From Octopus bimaculoides (Eukaryota): DNA of 48,278 nucleotides. The translations under genes were made by a program, and so were the position numbers. Positions 3,050 to 47,552 of the stretch are shown here, piece by piece. Within the stretch, counting starts at the first letter, position 1. The number at the start of each line of letters is the position of its first letter. Below the pieces are notes generated by a model. The model worked only from the letters and a program-made list of their open reading frames with translations. It did not search any database and was not told the DNA's origin. Location: positions 35,689,888-35,738,165 of the forward strand of contig NC_068993.1 in the NCBI RefSeq assembly GCF_001194135.2, written 5' to 3'.

Positions 3050-3810
3050 NNNNNNNNNNNNNNNNNNNNNNNNNNNNNNNNNNNNNNNNNNNNNNNNNNN
3101 NNNNNNNNNNNNNNNNNNNNNNNNNNNNNNNNNNNNNNNNNNNNNNNNNNNNNNNNNNNNNNNNNNNNNNNNNNNNNNNNNNNNNNNNNNNNNNNNNNNN
3201 NNNNNNNNNNNNNNNNNNNNNNNNNNNNNNNNNNNNNNNNNNNNNNNNNNNNNNNNNNNNNNNNNNNNNNNNNNNNNNNNNNNNNNNNNNNNNNNNNNNN
3301 NNNNNNNNNNNNNNNNNNNNNNNNNNNNNNNNNNNNNNNNNNNNNNNNNNNNNNNNNNNNNNNNNNNNNNNNNNNNNNNNNNNNNNNNNNNNNNNNNNNN
3401 NNNNNNNNNNNNNNNNNNNNNNNNNNNNNNNNNNNNNNNNNNNNNNNNNNNNNNNNNNNNNNNNNNNNNNNNNNNNNNNNNNNNNNNNNNNNNNNNNNNN
3501 NNNNNNNNNNNNNNNNNNNNNNNNNNNNNNNNNNNNNNNNNNNNNNNNNNNNNNNNNNNNNNNNNNNNNNNNNNNNNNNNNNNNNNNNNNNNNNNNNNNN
3601 NNNNNNNNNNNNNNNNNNNNNNNNNNNNNNNNNNNNNNNNNNNNNNNNNNNNNNNNNNNNNNNNNNNNNNNNNNNNNNNNNNNNNNNNNNNNNNNNNNNN
3701 NNNNNNNNNNNNNNNNNNNNNNNNNNNNNNNNNNNNNNNNNNNNNNNNNNNNNNNNNNNNNNNNNNNNNNNNNNNNNNNNNNNNNNNNNNNNNNNNNNNN
3801 NNNNNNNNNN
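3050..3810. other. Assembly gap (N)
   Basis: Run of N. Confidence 1.
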
Positions 3811-4507: not shown

Positions 4508-5366
4508 NNNNNNNNNNNNNNNNNNNNNNNNNNNNNNNNNNNNNNNNNNNNNNNNNNNNNNNNNNNNNNNNNNNNNNNNNNNNNNNNNNNNNNNNNNNNN
4601 NNNNNNNNNNNNNNNNNNNNNNNNNNNNNNNNNNNNNNNNNNNNNNNNNNNNNNNNNNNNNNNNNNNNNNNNNNNNNNNNNNNNNNNNNNNNNNNNNNNN
4701 NNNNNNNNNNNNNNNNNNNNNNNNNNNNNNNNNNNNNNNNNNNNNNNNNNNNNNNNNNNNNNNNNNNNNNNNNNNNNNNNNNNNNNNNNNNNNNNNNNNN
4801 NNNNNNNNNNNNNNNNNNNNNNNNNNNNNNNNNNNNNNNNNNNNNNNNNNNNNNNNNNNNNNNNNNNNNNNNNNNNNNNNNNNNNNNNNNNNNNNNNNNN
4901 NNNNNNNNNNNNNNNNNNNNNNNNNNNNNNNNNNNNNNNNNNNNNNNNNNNNNNNNNNNNNNNNNNNNNNNNNNNNNNNNNNNNNNNNNNNNNNNNNNNN
5001 NNNNNNNNNNNNNNNNNNNNNNNNNNNNNNNNNNNNNNNNNNNNNNNNNNNNNNNNNNNNNNNNNNNNNNNNNNNNNNNNNNNNNNNNNNNNNNNNNNNN
5101 NNNNNNNNNNNNNNNNNNNNNNNNNNNNNNNNNNNNNNNNNNNNNNNNNNNNNNNNNNNNNNNNNNNNNNNNNNNNNNNNNNNNNNNNNNNNNNNNNNNN
5201 NNNNNNNNNNNNNNNNNNNNNNNNNNNNNNNNNNNNNNNNNNNNNNNNNNNNNNNNNNNNNNNNNNNNNNNNNNNNNNNNNNNNNNNNNNNNNNNNNNNN
5301 NNNNNNNNNNNNNNNNNNNNNNNNNNNNNNNNNNNNNNNNNNNNNNNNNNNNNNNNNNNNNNNNNN
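4508..5366. other. Assembly gap (N)
   Basis: Run of N. Confidence 1.
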
Positions 5367-6397: not shown

Positions 6398-8109
6398 ACA
6401 CTGTCACTGACAGTTTTAACTCTACAAAATCACCAAAAGCCAGAGATGTTTTGGCAAGTACAGGCCTACCAAGAAACCATAGATCACACTAGAAATTTTA
6501 GACTTGTATGACAAAAGAAGAGAGTTGAAGAAGAAAAAGTTTGACTAGGAAGGTGACCAAAGAGTCATGGATAGAGGAACAGTGTAGGGATATTGAGGGA
6601 AACCTAAAGAAGAACAACAGTAAGAAAGATTATCAGCTGATCAAAGAAGTTACAAGCAACAAGCAAGGACGGCCCAGCACAATACTTAATAAAGAGGAGA
6701 AATCAGGCAAGGGAAGAGGCCATGTGGATGCACTCCAAGTAATATGTAATAAGATGTGGCAGACAGGAGAGTGGCCGGCACATTAGACTCAGATGCTGGT
6801 GATCACCTTACCAAAAAAGGGCATCTACAACAATGCCAGGACTACAGAACAATTACCTTGATATGCCACACAAGCAAAGTGTTGTTGAGAATCACCCTTA
6901 ATAGACTCAAACCCCAAGCAAAGAAAATCATTGCCGAGGAGCAAGCAAGTTTCAGGGCGGTTTGCAGCACAATAGAGAAGATTTTCAATTCTGTGTGAGG
7001 GCTCTCTTCAGCACCAGTAACAACTTTTTCATGTGTTCGTGGACTTCAAAATGGCATTTGACAGGGTGTAGCATTCGAGACTCTGGTCCACCATGAGGCT
7101 ATATAACATCAACGCGAATCTCATTCGTGCCTTTGATAGTCTGTATGATAAAACAAGTGGTGCGGTTTACCTGAACGGCTACATTGGCATGTGGTTCAAA
7201 ACAACAATCGGTGTAAGACAATGCTGTCCAATCTCGCCAATCTTTTTCAACATCTTCCTTGACCGCTGCACTGGAAGACTACAATGGTACGATTAGCATT
7301 GGCGGCAGAGCCCTAACAAAACTGCGATTTGCATATGATATTGTCGGACTGGCGAGCTCAGAGCAAGAACTAAAACAACTAGTAAAACGCCTGGACAAGA
7401 CTTCCAATGAATTTAACATAGAGAAAACAAAGGTTATGACAAACTGCCCAAACGGAATCAGTACCAACATACGCGTCAGTGGAGTTGAGCTTGAAGAAGT
7501 TCAAAACTTCAAATATCTTGGGGTGATACTGAATGACCAAGGTTCCAAGTCTTAATGAATATCCCGCATTGCCAAAATGACAGCAGCAATGACCAAATTC
7601 AGAACACTATGGAAAGCCAGAAGTATCTCACTGAGCTCCAAAATTAGGCTAATGAGATCACTAGTGATCTTAATATTCTTGTATGCCTGTGAGACATGGA
7701 CACTGACAGCAGAAATCGAAAGAACAATCCAGGTTACAGAGATGAAATGCTTCAGGAGACTTTTGGGAATATCATATAGAGATCGAGTCCCAAATGAGGA
7801 AGTAAAAATAAGAATAATGCAGGCAATAGGTCCCTATGAGTAACTTCTTACCACAATGAAGAAACATAAACTCAGGTAGTTTAAGCATGTCACACGCTCA
7901 TCAAGGTTGGCCAAAACAATCCTTCAGCGAACAGTCAAATCTGAAGCAGACAGAGAAAGAAGGAAGGAAACAACATGTGTGGGTGGGCAGGCCGAAACAT
8001 GAGAGAAGCAGTGCGAGAAGCAGAAGACAGAGGTACGTGGAGGGATTTGGTCGCAATGTCACCAGTGGTGCCACAATGGTCAGACTACGGAATATGTAAT
8101 GTAATGTAA
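6398..8109 (+). mobile_element. RTE-clade LINE, 5'-truncated and decayed reverse transcriptase with short tandem 3' tail
   Basis: Consecutive frames give WIEEQC..IEGNLKKNNSKK, ICNKMWQTGEWP, YRTITLI..SKVLLRI.LNRL, EEQASFR, VDFKMAFDRV, GVRQCCPISP, LRFAYD (degenerate FADD), FKYLG, FLYACETWTL and IGPYE. The 3' tail is (ATGTA)3. There are many stops and frameshifts and an internal deletion near 6710. Confidence 0.93.
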
Positions 8110-8294
8110 CACCCATGAGCTGCAAAGTCTCCCCAAAATATATTTTAAGATTACATACATATATTACTCAAGAATTTAGTTAGATAGATATTATATGCAT
8201 GAACCATATTGGGAATCGTCTTAATAGACAGGAAATAACAATATTGATAAATATTCCAATGGTTTCATAGAGACGAAAATGCAAATCTGGCAAG

Positions 8295-8383
8295 TGTTGT
8301 TGTTGTTGTTGTTGTTGTTACTATTATTATTATTATTATTATTATTATCATCATCATTATCATCATCATCATCATCATCATCG

Positions 8384-8420
<37 letters not shown>

Positions 8421-8460
8421 TATTATTATTATTAGTATTACCATTATTATTATTATTATG

Positions 8461-8496
<36 letters not shown>

Positions 8497-8500
8497 ATTA
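8295..8500. repeat. Compound (GTT)n(ATT)n(ATC)n(ATT)n trinucleotide microsatellite
   Basis: Directly visible; explains the poly-N/D/I/M ORFs. Confidence 0.95.
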
Positions 8501-10829: not shown

Positions 10830-11340
10830 TTCTACTCTAGGCACAGAGCCCGAAATTTGGGGGGAGGGGGCCAGTCGATTACATCGACCCCAGTGAGGAA
10901 CGAGTACTAACGATTGTGCCAGCTCACCGCNNNNNNNNNNNNNNNNNNNNATTAGATTGAATCCAGTACGCAACTGTTACTTAATTTATCTACCCTGAAA
11001 GGATGAAAGGCAAAGTTAACCTCGGCGGAATTTGAACTCAGAATGTAATGGCAGACTTAATAAAGAATCTTTTCTACTCTAGGCACAGAGCCCGAAATTT
11101 GGGGGGAGGGGGCCAGTCGATTACATCGACCCCAGTGAGGAACGAGTACTAACGATTGTGCCAGCTCACCGCCTTATCATGTGTAAATATTAGGTTGAAA
11201 TGTTATCACAATGCTAACAACTTCGGGGCATGGAGTAGTCAATTACATTACCAGTTAATATGTACATTAACTGATACATATTTTATTGACTCCGAAACAA
11301 TAAAAGGTAAAGTCAACCTCGGCGAAATTTGAACTCAGTT
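10830..11340 (-). mobile_element. Cluster of four family A SINE pieces (10830-10930, 10951-11056, 11072-11175, ~11225-11340)
   Basis: Shared blocks TTTAT(C/T)GACCCCGAAAGGATGAAAGGCAAAGTC.ACCTCGGCGGAATTTGAACTCAG (reverse B-box GAGTTCAAATTCC) and GTCGATTACATCGACCCCAGT. Confidence 0.8.
10931..10950. other. Assembly gap (20 N)
   Basis: Run of N. Confidence 1.
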
Positions 11341-15744: not shown

Positions 15745-16082
15745 NNNNNNNNNNNNNNNNNNNNNNNNNNNNNNNNNNNNNNNNNNNNNNNNNNNNNNNN
15801 NNNNNNNNNNNNNNNNNNNNNNNNNNNNNNNNNNNNNNNNNNNNNNNNNNNNNNNNNNNNNNNNNNNNNNNNNNNNNNNNNNNNNNNNNNNNNNNNNNNN
15901 NNNNNNNNNNNNNNNNNNNNNNNNNNNNNNNNNNNNNNNNNNNNNNNNNNNNNNNNNNNNNNNNNNNNNNNNNNNNNNNNNNNNNNNNNNNNNNNNNNNN
16001 NNNNNNNNNNNNNNNNNNNNNNNNNNNNNNNNNNNNNNNNNNNNNNNNNNNNNNNNNNNNNNNNNNNNNNNNNNNNNNNNNN
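15745..16082. other. Assembly gap (N) within (TA)n
   Basis: Run of N. Confidence 1.
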
Positions 16083-16299: not shown

Positions 16300-17910
16300 C
16301 TAGCTAGAGCTTCTAAATATACGATGTTTTGAGTGTGTTCTCTAATTGGTGTATAAATGAAAAGATTTTGGGGACTTCCAACTCGTAAACATTCTACATG
16401 CAATTGCCCATGACAAAAGTAAGGTGAAATCCAATAACCTTGAGAGATTGTCTTTGAGATTTAGTCACAGAGCGAAGCTTAGTTTCACCGAGAACTGGAA
16501 CCGTTTAAATTCAAACAGGTGGTTATATGGGATTAACGAGATCCATAGAATGTAGACATCATTACCTTTATAGTTCCCGGTCATAATTGTTGCCTCTAGG
16601 ACATCGGATCACATTGCTTTCACCACCAGTCTGGTGCCATAGCACAGACCAGGTGGATCCAGATTCCTGAGCAGCATGATTCGGGTCCCCCTTTTAAGCA
16701 GTAAGTGGTGAGGTGGAAAAACTACAGCCTTGTCTTGGTCAATGACAGTGTCGATGGATTTGAAAGACTGTTCTTGTGCTGGCGGCATCTGCAAGAGATC
16801 CCAGTTGGTTTTGTCGACAGTATCATTACGTGGGGCTAAGATGGCTCACTGACAGAGTCATTGACTGTTGCTAAAGTTTTGTGCAATGTTTGGGGCACAT
16901 GCGTTATGAGATCATTAACAGTTGGTACCATCTCACTACAGGGTAGCCAGTGTTGCTATATATGGTTGACATACGGTAGTAGCCCATTCCCTATCTTCGG
17001 AAGCTGCCAGCCCGGCAGTTTGACCACCAAATAATTGGGCCCTCATGTTAACTCTCAGGTGCAGTTTAGTCAGTTGCTTCCACAGATAGGATTGCTTGAG
17101 ACAGACCTGTAGTTTATCTGATTTTGTACATTTTGGGATCACAGGAAGGGTTTGTCTGAAATCCCCAGCCAAAGCTACAGTGACCCCCACCTATAAGAAT
17201 GTCCTTTCCTCTCAAATCTCTTAGGATACGGTCACCAGCCTCAAGTGCTCCACGGTGAGACATAGTGCATTCATCCCAGACAAGACCTTGACCTTTGCTG
17301 ATGTCTTAGAAATGTTGTAAATCGGAGTCTCTGTCCTAACTAAATTCAAGGGAACTTTGAAAGTAGAATGAGCTGTTCGTCTACCTATCATGAGTGTAGC
17401 TGCTATTCCAGAATACGTTACCGTCAATGCAATGCACCCATGTAGACGGACTTTTGTTAACAAAAGATTGATCAAAAACCTTTTTCCATTACCCCACAGG
17501 AGCATCCAAAAAGAACAGGTCTCTCTTTTCCTCCTGAGTCAATGGAATGTCAAATACTCATAGAGAATGTTCATGTTATAGGATGATGGTCTTTTCTGGG
17601 CTGTTCTCTTATTGGATATGGCAAGCCATACTCCTGCAAAGGGTTTCTTCCAAGCGGAAGAACTTTGTCTTGAAGAAGAAGTAGAGCCTCATTCTTGATG
17701 TTCACAGTCAGCTGAATTTCGAGACCTTTATCTTGCCTCTGCAATCTATTGACAATGTCTTCACAGAAGGATTCATAGTGATTCTCCAAAAGCTGGTGAG
17801 GGTTAGAGATATCACAAGCCTGAAGCATAATGGTGAAGAGATTTCGCAACTGAAATGCAGAGCAGAAAACAAGTGCCTCATTCAGAATCGCATTTCAGTG
17901 ACTGTCTTCT
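16300..17910 (-). mobile_element. Helitron RepHel fragment (Pif1-family helicase half), decayed
   Basis: Minus frames read QLRNLFTIMLQACDISNPHQL (linker), FLDAP.G.GK.FLINLLL (frameshifted Walker A), SGIAATLMIGRRTAHSTFKVP, LAGDFRQTLPVIP, NMRAQL, IMLLRNLDPPGLCYGTRLVV, LEATIMTG and FEFKRFQFSVKLSFA. No Rep domain is seen. Confidence 0.93.
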
Positions 17911-18659: not shown

Positions 18660-18957
18660 NNNNNNNNNNNNNNNNNNNNNNNNNNNNNNNNNNNNNNNNN
18701 NNNNNNNNNNNNNNNNNNNNNNNNNNNNNNNNNNNNNNNNNNNNNNNNNNNNNNNNNNNNNNNNNNNNNNNNNNNNNNNNNNNNNNNNNNNNNNNNNNNN
18801 NNNNNNNNNNNNNNNNNNNNNNNNNNNNNNNNNNNNNNNNNNNNNNNNNNNNNNNNNNNNNNNNNNNNNNNNNNNNNNNNNNNNNNNNNNNNNNNNNNNN
18901 NNNNNNNNNNNNNNNNNNNNNNNNNNNNNNNNNNNNNNNNNNNNNNNNNNNNNNNNN
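18660..18957. other. Assembly gap (N)
   Basis: Run of N. Confidence 1.
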
Positions 18958-21729: not shown

Positions 21730-22230
21730 NNNNNNNNNNNNNNNNNNNNNNNNNNNNNNNNNNNNNNNNNNNNNNNNNNNNNNNNNNNNNNNNNNNNNNN
21801 NNNNNNNNNNNNNNNNNNNNNNNNNNNNNNNNNNNNNNNNNNNNNNNNNNNNNNNNNNNNNNNNNNNNNNNNNNNNNNNNNNNNNNNNNNNNNNNNNNNN
21901 NNNNNNNNNNNNNNNNNNNNNNNNNNNNNNNNNNNNNNNNNNNNNNNNNNNNNNNNNNNNNNNNNNNNNNNNNNNNNNNNNNNNNNNNNNNNNNNNNNNN
22001 NNNNNNNNNNNNNNNNNNNNNNNNNNNNNNNNNNNNNNNNNNNNNNNNNNNNNNNNNNNNNNNNNNNNNNNNNNNNNNNNNNNNNNNNNNNNNNNNNNNN
22101 NNNNNNNNNNNNNNNNNNNNNNNNNNNNNNNNNNNNNNNNNNNNNNNNNNNNNNNNNNNNNNNNNNNNNNNNNNNNNNNNNNNNNNNNNNNNNNNNNNNN
22201 NNNNNNNNNNNNNNNNNNNNNNNNNNNNNN
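21730..22230. other. Assembly gap (N) within (TA)n
   Basis: Run of N. Confidence 1.
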
Positions 22231-22250
22231 ATATATATATATATATATAT

Positions 22251-22408
22251 ACTACGGGTTTCTTTGAGTTTCTGTCTACCAAATCCACTCACAAGGTTGG
22301 TCCAGAGCTATGGTAGAAGAAACTTCCACAAGATACCACGCAGTGGGACTGAACCCAAAATCATGTGGTTACAAAGCAAGCTTCTTACCACACTACCACG
22401 CCTATGCA
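22251..22408 (-). mobile_element. Family C SINE, 5' half
   Basis: Reverse strand reads GGTAGTGTGGTAAGAAGCTTGC..GGGTTCAGTCCCACTGCGTGG..CCTTGTGAGTGGATTTGGTAGAC; matches 45101-45271. Confidence 0.85.
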
Positions 22409-24354: not shown

Positions 24355-26870
24355 TCAGTAAGACAGGTGTATGAACAACAAGCAGGTGTATAAGTTTGAC
24401 GCTCGGAAAAGTGAAAGAGTCTTTTACGTTTCGAGTCTGTGCTCTTCAACAGAAAGGAATAAGAGAAAATAAATAAAGGGAGAATAAAAAACAAACTTGT
24501 GGATTTAGTGATCAAGCATGGCGACTGGTTGGAAGAAAATAGTTTGACAGGAGAGAAAGAAAGAAGAGGAGATAAAGTATTGATGATCCCAAAACAAAGG
24601 TGCGTGTACGTGTGTGTGTATGTGAGAATGTGTAAGTGTATGTGTATGGATAGGGGCTAGTGACTTTGATGTGTGTGGATGTGTTGTGTGTGTGTAAGTA
24701 TGTACGTCTGTAATGTGTGGGTGTGTGAGTGATGGTGCTTCGATGTGCGAATGATGATGTGTGGGTGTGCAGATGATGGTGTGTGGTGAGGGTGCTGAGA
24801 AGTGCTAGTGTGTGTGGAGTGGTGTGGAGTGGTGTGGAGTGGTGTGGAGTGGTGTGGAGTGGTGTGGAGTGGTGTGGAGTGGTGTGGAGGTGTGTGATGT
24901 GGGCGTGGAGGTGGAAATGTGGGGTAGGGTGTTGGGGCACGTTGTAGGGGGAGGGAGTATCAATGAAGACAGTATGTGGGTAAGAGTGAAGTGAGGAGAA
25001 GTAGGTGTCAGACGAAGAGAGGAGGGTAGGAGTGAAGAGAAGAAGTAAGCTCAGATGAGGAGAGGAGGTGAAGGGAGTGGCATAAAGAGAGGGTATGAGT
25101 CAAATGAAGAAAGGAGTGAAGAGAGATTAATTCCTCTTCACGGCGAAGGCGAACACAGACAGGTGTTGTAATGAATGACCGGTAGAGCAGAGATGGCGTT
25201 AACCAGGGTGTCATTGCTGAGTCTCATGTCTCGGAGCGTCTCCGAGAACCGGTCAGCCAAGGGGTGTCCCATTTCACCGATGTACAGAGAAGGGGAGAAA
25301 GAGCAGGAGATGCAGTAATTGACAGTGGCTAGAAGTGCAGATAAAGGAGTTGGTGGTATGATAGGGACAATGATGGGTACCTGTGAGGATGATGGTGTTG
25401 GAGAGGTAGGGGGCAAGTGCGGCAGCTTGGGTGGGAGCAGGAGAACGAGCCAGGTTGGGAGGTGGTGTTAGGGAAGGAACTGTGGACCAGGAAGTCACGC
25501 ATGGTGTGGGCTCGTTTGAAGGATAAAAGAGGTAGTTAGGGGGAAATGTGCGAGGTGGAGGGTCGGACTTGAGTCGCTGAAAGTCTCGGAGAATGGTGTG
25601 ATGGAAGGACAGAGTGGAGGGGTGTTAGGTTAGGGGAAAAGGGAGACAGGCAACGGCGGGGGAAGTGCGGGGAGATAGAGCCGAGGCACGGTCCACGGAA
25701 AGTGCTCTGGCAAGAGCTGTGTGGATAGTGGTGAGGAAATATCCACGAAAGTTGAAGTAGTGAGCCATGAGTTGAGACTGAGTCTCGAAGTCATGATTGT
25801 CACTGCGGAGCCTGCTCAGACAGAGGATTTGGAAGTAAGGGACGGATAGCTTGGTGTGGGTAGGGAGGGAGGAGGAGAAGTTAAGTTATGTGTGTGAGTT
25901 GGTGTGTTTGTAGTGGATGGAGGTATTAAGAGCAGAGAGGTGTATGCTGATCAAAATGTCGAGAAATGCAACGTAAGTGTTGGAAATAGTGCAGATTTCG
26001 AGGGCAGGATGGAAGGATTGGACAACAGCGAGGAAGGAGTCTAGTTGTTCACGGGAGAGTGAGATCGCACCGATACAGTCATCAATATAACGACCTTTCC
26101 CTCCCAAAGGGGCGCGTACGTGTGTGTGTGTATGTGAGAATGTGTAAGTGTATGTGTATGGATAGGGGCTAGTGATGTTGATGTGTGTGGATGTGTTATG
26201 TGTGTGTAAGTGTGTGAATTTTGGGGAGTGGAACCAGTGAATCCTGAGAATATTTGGGCCTCCACGTAGCCAACGAAAAGGTTCGGAGCCTGTTCTCATT
26301 CTCATAGTCACTCCCGAGATATGTTTGTAAAAATCCCCCGCGAACAAAAAGTAGTAGAGGGAGAGAATAAGTTCGGCCAGACGAAGAAGTGTGGAGGTGT
26401 CAGGTTGGGGTTTGCGTCGAAGGTCTAGGAAGTGTATGAGTGCAAAGAAGTCCTTCCTCATGTTGGATCACCGTATATAGACTCATGATGTCAGGAGTGC
26501 AGAGAAGTTTAGAAGAGTCACGGCGGAAGGAGAAAGAGTTGGAGAGACGTAGATCGTAGTTAGTGTCGTGGATGGGGGACGGGAGGGAAGCACTTAGAGG
26601 GCAAGGATACGGTCAAGGTATTTTGTGATAAACTCCGTAGGGATGTTACAAGCGGAGACGATAGGGCGACCAGGGTTGTTTGGGCTTGTGAATTTGGGGC
26701 AGGAAGTAAATATAGGTGCGTGGAGTGCGGACAATGAGGCCGGAGGCGGTGGGAAGGAGACGGGAGGAGAAGATGAGGTCATGGATAGTGGAAGACACAG
26801 TCTGTTGGTAGTTAGACGTGGGGTTGGAGGGCAGAGGGAAATAGAAGGAGGTGTCATATATGTAGTTATG
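24355..26870 (-). mobile_element. Penelope-like retroelement: most of RT, GIY-YIG, 3' UTR and terminal module; decayed
   Basis: Minus frames read NPTSNYQQTV, IYFLPQIHKP/NNPGRPIVSACNIPTEFITKYLDRIL, LLRLAELILSL, GRYIDDCIG, VAFLDI, IHYKHTNSH and VNYCISCSFSPSLYIGE..LADRFSE (GIY-YIG). A pyrimidine-rich 3' UTR follows, then the CTGTTGAAGAG..CTCGAAACGT terminus. Confidence 0.93.
24811..24889. repeat. 10-bp tandem repeat (GGTGTGGAGT) x ~8 within the Penelope 3' UTR
   Basis: Directly visible. Confidence 0.95.
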
Positions 26871-26976: not shown

Positions 26977-27678
26977 NNNNNNNNNNNNNNNNNNNNNNNN
27001 NNNNNNNNNNNNNNNNNNNNNNNNNNNNNNNNNNNNNNNNNNNNNNNNNNNNNNNNNNNNNNNNNNNNNNNNNNNNNNNNNNNNNNNNNNNNNNNNNNNN
27101 NNNNNNNNNNNNNNNNNNNNNNNNNNNNNNNNNNNNNNNNNNNNNNNNNNNNNNNNNNNNNNNNNNNNNNNNNNNNNNNNNNNNNNNNNNNNNNNNNNNN
27201 NNNNNNNNNNNNNNNNNNNNNNNNNNNNNNNNNNNNNNNNNNNNNNNNNNNNNNNNNNNNNNNNNNNNNNNNNNNNNNNNNNNNNNNNNNNNNNNNNNNN
27301 NNNNNNNNNNNNNNNNNNNNNNNNNNNNNNNNNNNNNNNNNNNNNNNNNNNNNNNNNNNNNNNNNNNNNNNNNNNNNNNNNNNNNNNNNNNNNNNNNNNN
27401 NNNNNNNNNNNNNNNNNNNNNNNNNNNNNNNNNNNNNNNNNNNNNNNNNNNNNNNNNNNNNNNNNNNNNNNNNNNNNNNNNNNNNNNNNNNNNNNNNNNN
27501 NNNNNNNNNNNNNNNNNNNNNNNNNNNNNNNNNNNNNNNNNNNNNNNNNNNNNNNNNNNNNNNNNNNNNNNNNNNNNNNNNNNNNNNNNNNNNNNNNNNN
27601 NNNNNNNNNNNNNNNNNNNNNNNNNNNNNNNNNNNNNNNNNNNNNNNNNNNNNNNNNNNNNNNNNNNNNNNNNNNNNN
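26977..27678. other. Assembly gap (N)
   Basis: Run of N. Confidence 1.
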
Positions 27679-28112: not shown

Positions 28113-28258
28113 CATATTAAATCTCAGTTTTATTAAATTTCAGTTTTCGTCTCCAAAATCCACTTAGAAGGCTTTGGTAGGCACGAGACAACAATAAAAA
28201 ACACTGATCCTGGAACCATGTGGTGGAGAAGCAAACTTCTTACCACACAGCCGCGCCT
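27885..28258 (-). mobile_element. Degenerate near-full family C SINE with internal (CA)n
   Basis: Head ..GCGGCTGTGTGGTAAGAAGTTTGC..ACATGGTTCCAGG; tail blocks TTGACAACCAGTG..TTTACGTCCC and TGAAACAAGTAAAA, as in 47866-48189. Confidence 0.75.
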
Positions 28259-28787: not shown

Positions 28788-29312
28788 CAGGAATACACCC
28801 ACATATTCCCACAGAGTATTTAAATCACTTCTGATAGGAAACAATTGAAGCGGAAATACTATTTGATTCATTCGTAATTTTTATATTCATTTTCATTTGT
28901 TATTCCTCTTTTGTTCTTTCATTTTTTTTAATTTCTATATATTCTAGATCCGCTTGCCTCTCGTTGATTGGTAGTAGTGAAGAAGCTACGTGGAAGTGAT
29001 AGATTCATAGCATAAATAACACTAGGAAAGTGCTGGTAACCGGTTCCATTATTTATAACACCGTCTAAGAACAATGGTTGGCCTGCAAACTTCCTCTTCT
29101 CTTGATATGCCAATCAATCAAATACAATGAGATAGGGTCTAGCCATTTTCCTCTGCTATTAGTTTCTCCATTTAGTACAGTGAAATCGAGTCTATCGTTA
29201 TTTTTGTCTTGCACGTAGATATATATATATATATATATATATATTGACTTATTTCGTATGTGTATTTCGTGTGCAAGATTCTTGATGTGGATACGTGTGT
29301 TGAAAGAAATAC

Positions 29313-29443
29313 AATTAAACTTTGGGAGAGGCATTATGCCGGTAATAAACACACGCACTGGTTCAGTCCTTTATTAAATTAATAAAGGACTGAACCAGTG
29401 CGTGTGTTTATTACCGGCATAATGCCTCTCCCAAGGTTTAATT
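29313..29443. repeat. 131-bp palindrome (65-bp arms, 1-nt spacer, one mismatch)
   Basis: 29322-29377 is the exact reverse complement of 29379-29434. Pairing extends to 29313/29443 with a single mismatch at 29321/29435. Confidence 0.97.
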
Positions 29444-29904
29444 ATATATATTGACGTTAGCTCTCTATTTTCCATGAGTAGAGTTCTTAATCACATTGAA
29501 CAAAACGACAAAACGGCCTGGACTGCAAAGCATTATCAGAGTAGTGTCTAGCCACACGGTTCAAGAAATTCTCCTTCTTCACGCATTTGGTGTTGCTGGA
29601 ATGTTGATCTTTTAGCAACATCATGTAACCAATCTTGACAAATTGCAGCCTTGTTTCCGGTAGCCAACATGAACTTCCTGTATGCCACCATTCGGTTATC
29701 CTCCAAGCCAGATGAGCTAGCTTTCTTTTAAATCGCATGGGACCGAATCAAACTATTTTAAACAATATACATACATACAGAGGAAGGGGAGAGAGGGGTA
29801 ATTAAGCGGATAAACAAATTAAACATAGCAGCTTGGGTTTGATATACAAAATACGTATATATATATGTGTGTGTGTGTATGTGTGTATATATATATGTAT
29901 ATAT

Positions 29905-36998: not shown

Positions 36999-37039
36999 NN
37001 NNNNNNNNNNNNNNNNNNNNNNNNNNNNNNNNNNNNNNN
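36999..37039. other. Assembly gap (N) within (CA)n
   Basis: Run of N. Confidence 1.
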
Positions 37040-44199: not shown

Positions 44200-45400
44200 C
44201 CTACTACCGAATCTACCTGTGTATGTATAAAACTCGGGTATTGGGGTGTCACTACCTTCTACGTATATCTCATATTTAGTACTGGGGATGTTCCATTTAT
44301 GAGGACGTACTCTTGTATTTGTCTGAGAGTGGGGTCGTTCGGGTGTTTCGATAAAATGCGAATGTCAAACCGACCCAGCGTGCCTCTTTATTCGTCTTTG
44401 ACATGTTGGTAGACTAGGAGGACTGTTTTTGTCGTCGTACTGTCTCAAATGTCCGTAATTCTCCTAGATGTCTCACCAATATATGCCATGCTCTTGTCTT
44501 CACAAGCACCCTCTATTCATCTTATGCTGTAGATTACATTTTTAATTCTACAGTTAATGCCAGTGTTAATCTTACACACCATGCACTTTTTATTGGTGCA
44601 TATGCTATGCTCAAAGTGGTACGTCCTACTTAATTCTGATCTGATAGAGCTCTCTGGATTTTCAACTATCGTAATGTTGAGTTTGACCTCCTTCAGAGTT
44701 TTCTTCGGGCAAATCTTCGGGCTAGTTCTCCATGGGTTATGGCCTCTACAAACACGACTCTTTAATATTTGTCGGCCTTGTACCATGTGTTCACCTCGTT
44801 TACTTTGTCGGTCTATTCCAGTCTTTACTTCTGTATCTAGGACACGTATTATTGGTTTCATTACACATAATGTAATCTAATTTCTTTCTCGCTCCCCTGT
44901 ATACCCGAACCCTGTCATTCTGGTCATATCGAGAGAACTGCACGCGGTGCATGAAGTTCTGTACATGTTTATTTGTTTCAAAGATTTTTGTATAGGGAAG
45001 ACAAGTTCTTCGTTGTCCTAAGTCTGCTATCAGTATGTTGATTTTCATATTCTGTGCAAAAGCTGAGCTCTTGTGAGCTACATATTTAGAAGCTATATAT
45101 ACACCACGGGCTTCTTTCATTTTCCGCCTAACAAATCCACTCATAAGGCTTTGGTCGGCACCTGCATGTAACAGAAGACACTGAGTTCAATCCTACTGCC
45201 ATGCAGTGGGACTGAACGTGGAACCATGTGGTTGAGAGGTAAATTTCTTACCACACCGCCACTCCTGCACCTATACTTAACGTATCCCTCCTCTATAATC
45301 AATAAGTTGCTAATTATCCAACATAGCCGAATCACTATTTTCTGATTGCTCTTTTCTAGTTGTAGAAAACGTCTTTTTCGTAAAGTCAGTTGTGTATAGA
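44200..45400 (-). mobile_element. Decayed Penelope-like element (third lineage): RT thumb + GIY-YIG
   Basis: Minus frames read ASKYVAHKSSAFAQNMKINILIADL, NFMHRVQFSRYDQ, CTNKKCMVCK..CRIKNVIYSIR*..AYIGETSRR (VIY at 44529-44537, YIG at 44475-44483, same frame) and ILSKHPNDPTLRQIQEYVLI..PVLN. Interrupted by a SINE at 45101-45271. Confidence 0.8.
45101..45271 (-). mobile_element. Family C SINE 5' half nested in the Penelope-like element
   Basis: Reverse strand GGTGCAGGAGTGGCGGTGTGGTAAGAA..GTTCAGTCCCACTGCATGG..AAAGCCTTATGAGTGGATTTG. Confidence 0.85.
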
Positions 45401-47374: not shown

Positions 47375-47552
47375 NNNNNNNNNNNNNNNNNNNNNNNNNN
47401 NNNNNNNNNNNNNNNNNNNNNNNNNNNNNNNNNNNNNNNNNNNNNNNNNNNNNNNNNNNNNNNNNNNNNNNNNNNNNNNNNNNNNNNNNNNNNNNNNNNN
47501 NNNNNNNNNNNNNNNNNNNNNNNNNNNNNNNNNNNNNNNNNNNNNNNNNNNN
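47375..47552. other. Assembly gap (N)
   Basis: Run of N. Confidence 1.

Follow-up and report, generated by a model that had tools for sequence, protein, structure and literature searches.

Why does a stretch of DNA that is otherwise full of decayed repeats hold a palindrome of 131 bp (2 x 65 bp + 1 bp) whose arms differ at a single position, and what put it there? The window around it, by which we mean the whole stretch of 48,278 nucleotides that was analyzed, is AT-rich (36.7% GC), has about 5% simple repeats, and is full of decayed retroelements. Apart from (TA)n runs, one seldom meets near-perfect palindromes as large as this; they can be fragile, and hairpin small RNAs can arise from them. 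And because assemblers are known to stumble over such sequences, it helps to establish that the one at 29313-29443 is probably real. The palindrome is genuine in sequence and non-coding, and the likeliest account is a selfish or neutral insertion whose general kind is already known. Which kind of insertion is a harder question, to which we give a graded answer.

The two arms pair at 64 of their 65 positions around one central base. The innermost 56 pairs (29322-29377 against 29379-29434) are perfect, pair 57 from the center is the sole mismatch (29321 T, 29435 G), and 8 more perfect pairs come after it. Outside the 65-bp arms, the match string shows that complementarity falls to chance level. 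A previous reading of this DNA, made from the sequence only, had described 56-bp perfect arms about a single A at 29378 and 65 bp per arm with one mismatch, and we find both. It had also described a 1-nt spacer; the single A is indeed unpaired, but the predicted folds, both as RNA and as DNA, have a 3-nt loop, AAT. When one arm is compared to the other with BLAST, the identity is 98.5% over 65 nt. A repeat finder stretches the arms to 74 nt at 95%, and the added bases are A/T chance matches in the flanks. Even allowing gaps, there is no inverted similarity beyond the arms, as the alignment of the flanks gives microsatellite matches only, and on those grounds a longer, older inverted repeat around the palindrome was rejected. 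The coordinates of all features are collected in Table 1.

Table 1. Features of the palindrome, of its flanks, and of the rest of the window (position 1 is the first base of the window).
Feature	Position	Strand	Remarks
Left arm	29313-29377		65 nt, AATTAAACTTTGGGAGAGGCATTATGCCGGTAATAAACACACGCACTGGTTCAGTCCTTTATTAA; 38% GC, 2 CpG, without tandem repeat
Central unpaired A	29378		predicted hairpin loop of 3 nt, 29377-29379
Right arm	29379-29443		65 nt; reverse complement of the left arm bar one position
Only mismatch	29321		T against G at 29435, from the match string
AT-rich core mini-palindrome	29370-29386		TTTATTAA-A-TTAATAAA, at the center
Mini-palindrome GGCAT-T-ATGCC	29330-29340		within the left arm; mirror GGCAT-A-ATGCC at 29416-29426
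TA, candidate 2-bp target-site duplication	29310-29311		one base outside the left arm; partner TA at 29445-29446
TTAA, alternative candidate 4-bp target-site duplication	29315-29318		2 nt inside the left end; partner TTAA at 29438-29441
13-bp direct repeat TATATATATTGAC, left copy	29236-29248	+	at the end of the (AT)13 microsatellite 29219-29244
13-bp direct repeat TATATATATTGAC, right copy	29443-29455	+	starts on the last base of the right arm
64-bp non-palindromic stretch	29249-29312		TG/TA-rich, TATTTCGT twice; separates the left arm from the left copy of the direct repeat
Frameshifted LINE	6529-8101	+	RVT_1 pieces (6753-7552); (TGTAA)3 tail at about 8085-8101
Broken PIF1-like helicase	16612-17894	-	PF05970, PF21530; several frames, pieces 16612-17538; looks like a Helitron-type relic
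Nine N runs	3050-3810, 4508-5366, 10931-10950, 15745-16082, 18660-18957, 21730-22230, 26977-27678, 36999-37039, 47375-47552		varied length

The predicted folds are far more stable than those of shuffled sequences. Folded as RNA, the palindrome has a predicted free energy of -118.7 kcal/mol, where shuffles average -34.8 (z = -19.6); folded as DNA, it has -75.8 kcal/mol (z = -23.6). A 40-nt core of the arm has exactly 2 exact occurrences, one per strand, where 0 are expected from 100 shuffles. The palindrome is the sole non-microsatellite one with a short spacer in the 48-kb window; the other perfect palindromes with arms of at least 28 bp are all (TA)n runs. That the arms are not microsatellite, that their CpGs are intact, and that each arm carries its own mini-hairpin GGCAT-T-ATGCC had been proposed in the sequence-only reading, and all of it holds: there is no tandem repeat inside 29313-29443, each arm has two CpGs, and the mini-hairpins lie at 29330-29340 and, as GGCAT-A-ATGCC, at 29416-29426. 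A CCGG site is present in each arm, at 29339-29342 and at 29414-29417. The other repeats are more diverged, as that reading had also said, with dispersed repeats near the palindrome at 77-84% identity. With 1 difference in 65 pairs, the palindrome is evolutionarily young. The intact CpGs of the arms are weak evidence of youth, because the CpG observed/expected ratio of the window is 0.72.

What kind of young insertion is it? Our first choice, which we hold tentatively, is a palindromic (fold-back) MITE, a copy of a DNA transposon that moves by cut-and-paste but is non-autonomous. Its two identical ends would be recognized by a transposase from another locus, which would excise the element, after which the element would be pasted into a TA or TTAA target, and the target would be duplicated. 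The terminal inverted repeats that characterize a MITE are here the 65-nt arms, with 64/65 positions paired and sharp ends; the element is small (131 bp) and non-coding, the overlapping open reading frames having neither a Pfam match nor a homologue. The insertion site is AT-rich and lies at the start of a (TA)4 run, as would be fitting for an element that targets TA. Once inserted, the element probably has no local role. If a polymerase read through it, the product would be a hairpin of 64-65 bp that Dicer-type enzymes could cut.

How would such a symmetric element arise? The founder of the family may have come from one transposon end, copied by strand-switch (snap-back) DNA synthesis, because the two-fold symmetry is exact about the AT-rich mini-palindrome, and a simple internal deletion would not yield such symmetry. 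For the same reason, that the symmetry is base-exact about TTTATTAA-A-TTAATAAA, two independent deletion breakpoints are disfavored as the source of the arms. Snap-back synthesis primed by a short inverted repeat is on record both for breaks and for free single strands (PMC11724301, PMC5728401), and strand-switch or snap-back has been put forward to account for MITEs whose inverted repeats are longer than expected (PMC3814204). By analogy with the events in PMC11724301, the core at 29370-29386 appears to be the kind of short inverted repeat able to prime snap-back synthesis. The structure of the palindrome, its uniqueness in the window, its youth, and its non-coding nature are observed; its mobility, superfamily, and snap-back origin are inferred.

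MITEs that fold back over essentially their whole length are known, among them PALTA1/2/4_CE, PALTTAA1/3_CE, and Hairpin, and their origin is acknowledged as unexplained (PMC3814204). Like PALTA and PALTTAA in C. elegans and Hairpin in Arabidopsis, our palindrome is short and non-coding, nearly the whole element is one inverted repeat, it has TA or TTAA at its ends, and its inverted repeats are too long for a simple internal deletion. The likeness is drawn without sequence comparison, and unlike those families, which have many copies and defined target duplications, here there is one visible copy and an ambiguous duplication. Another relevant element is the Hsmar1-derived Made1, which at 80 bp consists of two 37-bp inverted repeats plus 6 bp (PMC1784062). 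As in Made1 and hsa-mir-548, we have a near-perfect palindrome of two terminal inverted repeats with a tiny spacer that would make a very stable RNA hairpin if transcribed. On the other hand, Made1 matches a known autonomous mariner, whereas the palindrome, longer than the 80 bp of Made1, has no known parent.

The target-site duplication is where this reading is least tidy. The TA dinucleotides at 29310-11 and 29445-46, which had been remarked upon in the sequence-only reading, are present. A symmetric TA at offset 0 or 1 is found by chance at 1.7% of positions, and the chance of a TTAA within the terminal 8-mer is 3.5%. Both symmetric patterns count for the MITE. Neither one abuts the arm ends cleanly, the TA being 1 nt outside and the TTAA 2 nt inside. 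If the target was TA, the putative termini C (29312) and A (29444) are unpaired; if it was TTAA, pairing runs 2 bp past the duplication, a 1-in-16 coincidence. The proposed fold-back MITE is still the likeliest single reading, though unproven; the TA that it was said to target is one base outside the pairing, and TTAA fits equally well. The pogo/Tigger-like look of its end is no more than a resemblance. The two targets predict different empty sites, ...GTTGAAAGAAA-TA-TATATTGACGTTAGC... for TA and ...GAAAGAAATACAA-TTAA-TTATATATATTGACG... for TTAA.

The 48-kb window has no second copy of the arm and no other MITE-like inverted repeats. No DNA-transposase remnant was seen in it either; its coding remnants are reverse-transcriptase and PIF1-helicase fragments. 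Exact-pattern scans for the arm in metagenome contigs, viral contigs, and prokaryote genomes returned zero matches, as did blastn against plasmids; the source eukaryote is in none of these collections, so what the zeros argue against is chiefly contamination from vectors or microbes. The arm is also absent from three ENA loci of sample ERZ26696912, which belong to another organism (43-49% GC, about 70% nucleotide identity). We know of no sequencing junction adapter or linker that the palindrome matches. Should the palindrome be a copy of a MITE, then some DNA-transposon family has been active recently in this genome, which in the window is otherwise dominated by decayed retroelements.

A further observation goes against the MITE, which leaves it unexplained: a 13-bp direct repeat, TATATATATTGAC, that is absent from the sequence-only reading. 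Its two copies bracket 194 bp (29249-29442), made of the 64-bp TG/TA-rich stretch and the palindrome. The repeat is sharp-edged, with no similarity past it when 29249-29312 is compared to 29456-29560. Because the sequences after the two copies are unrelated, the repeat is duplication-like, and an old tandem duplication was rejected as its source. In the same geometry, 0.2% of random positions have an exact direct repeat of at least 13 bp by chance; for the starts of (TA)n runs, the figure is about 3.5% (3/86, its own site counted). The motif TTGAC follows just 2 of the 51 (TA)≥4 runs in the window, and those are the two TATATATATTGAC copies.

The alternative that takes this repeat at face value is that a 194-bp piece (29249-29442) entered a staggered break beside the (TA)13 run, duplicating TATATATATTGAC; we consider it possible, if somewhat unlikely. 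In detail, only 129 bp (29249-29377, minus strand) would have come from a source; the 3′ end of the new strand would then have snapped back on the AT-rich core, copied 65 nt, and joined the other end of the target at an A/T microhomology. The break could have been made by a LINE endonuclease (target-primed reverse transcription), or repair could have captured a folded-back single strand. The predicted empty site is ...CACGTAGA(TA)nTTGAC-GTTAGCTCTCTATTTTCC... A LINE-type insert has a target-site duplication of about 7-20 bp, and the 13-bp exact repeat that flanks 29249-29442 falls within that range. Besides the sharp edges and the low chance of the repeat, and the rarity of TTGAC after (TA)≥4 runs, this alternative has in its favor that the right copy starts exactly at the outer end of the palindrome. 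On the minus strand, the far end of 29249-29442 reads ACGAAATACACATACGAAATAA, which is rich in A and has a short unit in duplicate, and there are LINEs with short-repeat tails in the window, such as the one ending in (TGTAA)3. For that resident LINE, we found no clear target-site duplication.

Several points count against this insertion. The A-rich tail is weak, there is no source copy in the window, and the repeat is partly low-complexity, which leaves it with moderate significance. Moreover, the 64-bp stretch could well be taken for the usual decayed flank of a TG/TA microsatellite and may belong to the site; 29249-29312 is either that or the tail end of the 194-bp insert. Snap-back inverted insertions have been documented at breaks and also within free single strands, and the documented inserts are mostly 5-34 bp, below the 65 bp needed here (PMC11724301). 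At L1 insertion sites, inverted duplications that formed through small hairpins have been observed (bioRxiv 10.1101/2024.12.14.628481), and those L1 events are tied to staggered-break insertion, as ours would be. The palindrome is like the snap-back insertions of PMC11724301 and PMC5728401 in having an inverted copy beside its template, a short inverted repeat at the turn-around, and microhomology at the far junction. It is unlike the yeast events, mostly 5-34 bp and with a loop that can be long, in that the copy is 65 bp with effectively zero spacer, and is fixed in a germline assembly.

Stated in full, the claim would be that the palindrome belongs to no family, and is the single insertion of a 129-bp nucleic acid at a staggered break, with a 13-bp duplication, whose leading end copied 65 nt of itself. 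As a whole we regard this claim as rather doubtful. If it is true, we would be looking at a perfect hairpin element at the moment of its birth, the locus would document a one-step origin of a whole-length fold-back element, and events of this sort could be how whole-length fold-back MITEs, whose origin has long been sought, and new hairpin-RNA loci come about. How does it compare with the fold-back MITE? The two are about equally supported. By a rough likelihood comparison, the local evidence favors the 194-bp insertion about ten-fold, and we judged the prior for a MITE to be about ten-fold higher; it is because the one offsets the other that they come near parity. Under either insertion reading, the locus is a single insertion and probably neutral.

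The palindrome could also have been made in place, without anything being inserted from elsewhere. In that case the left arm and the sequence leftward of it are native; a break occurred just to the right of 29377, snap-back synthesis copied 65 nt, and end joining linked the copy to the right flank, so that the 13-bp repeat is a coincidence. The empty site would have the left arm and lack the right one. We think this improbable. The AT-rich mini-palindrome at the center can prime fold-back synthesis (PMC11724301; PMC5728401), the 64-bp left flank appears native, and there is A/T microhomology at the junction 29443/29444; however, both the 13-bp direct repeat and the symmetric TA/TTAA are left to chance, and a copied stretch of 65 bp is long for the pathway. 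The sequence-only reading had suggested a palindrome made by hairpin-mediated repair and kept homogeneous by conversion between the arms. Hairpin-mediated synthesis is probably right for the origin of the arms, but the 13-bp direct repeat suggests insertion and not repair in place, and arm-to-arm conversion is not needed for a young element.

Can we be sure that the palindrome is in the genome at all? The window is a scaffolded draft with contigs broken by microsatellites: it has nine N gaps, and these mostly abut (TA)n, (TG)n, or (TC)n arrays. A fold-back chimeric read, gap filling, or a collapsed join could have made one of the arms or removed an interior. Chimeric reads do form at inverted repeats in library preparation, at a low read fraction that should lose to the true path (PMC10908179), and whole-genome amplification and long-read methods also yield artificial palindromes (PMC6218980, PMC12870357). 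Yet a fold-back copy would match its template up to an arbitrary breakpoint, and here there is a mismatch at pair 57 and then 8 further pairs, an internal difference from which we take the arms to be physically distinct. Two independent false joins would be required, one at the center and one at 29443/4. The flanks are unique, the nearest gaps in the contig are 1.6 kb away on the left and 7.5 kb away on the right, and the window has no other such palindrome. An assembly or library artefact, which had been listed among the options, is therefore disfavored, and we give it only a small chance of being the explanation.

The last option that had been listed is a hairpin-RNA locus, where the DNA would be transcribed and diced into 21-23-nt RNAs that regulate targets, be it as a hairpin-RNA, endo-siRNA, or microRNA gene; such a function would be compatible with a mobile-element origin. 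A canonical animal microRNA precursor has an imperfect stem of about 33-35 bp and an apical loop of about 10 nt or more. Here, 64-65 uninterrupted pairs are predicted around a 3-nt loop, a stem about twice the canonical length and without bulges. In Drosophila, the endo-siRNA (hpRNA) genes are expressed and act on targets, and their hairpins have longer arms and a true loop. The palindrome resembles them in being a long perfectly paired predicted hairpin, one that would be a substrate for Dicer rather than Drosha, and differs in its shorter arms and 3-nt loop. The stability of the predicted hairpin, with 64-65 continuous pairs, favors such a gene, and microRNA genes have arisen from palindromic MITEs, as in Made1 giving rise to hsa-mir-548 (PMC1784062). 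But no Rfam family reaches its gathering score, either in the palindrome or elsewhere in the window, and in a permissive scan both strands match a large number of unrelated microRNA models, from plants as well as animals, far under their thresholds. The best of these matches has 60.7 bits against a threshold of 140, which is how any perfect hairpin would behave. So while the structure is compatible, a small-RNA hairpin gene has no support, and we find it very unlikely.

Other classes of element were dismissed more briefly: a Helitron, because the structure is a whole-length palindrome, despite the PIF1-type helicase relic in the window; a tRNA-derived SINE, because the window has no tRNA-like sequence (and no tRNAs); and a Mutator-like element, with its 9-11-bp duplication, because the two ends of 29249-29442 do not form a pair of inverted repeats. 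Drosophila-type Foldback (FB) elements have long arms of tandem sub-repeats and a 9-bp duplication abutting the arms, and here there is no tandem repeat inside 29313-29443 and the left copy of the direct repeat is 64 bp away from the left arm. Coding flanks were considered at 28928-29113, 29487-29738, and 29548-29706 (minus strand) and rejected, these being open reading frames without a Pfam match or a homologue; an exact-protein look-up of two local open reading frames gave no match.

Elsewhere in the window, three longer open reading frames (25889-26467, 256-980, and 44520-45186, all on the minus strand) have the appearance of retroelement fragments, and one of them contains a YIDD motif; Pfam gives no match for any, and the one that was searched has no homologue. 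The closest relatives of the LINE fragment are ENA contigs at most 72% identical to it. Two records named Thiolapillus sp. are about 61-63% identical to the LINE, and are probably host DNA in a symbiont assembly; this LINE family has relatives in records that look like invertebrate host contamination. A dispersed repeat of about 56 bp is present at 28203-28258, 45211-45266, and 22348-22404, in copies 77-84% identical. The block at 24-26 kb is unusually G-rich, with a GC content of 0.475 and a GC skew of 0.51. Finally, just downstream of the LINE tail there is a long compound trinucleotide array (8290-8500) of GTT/ATT/ATC units.
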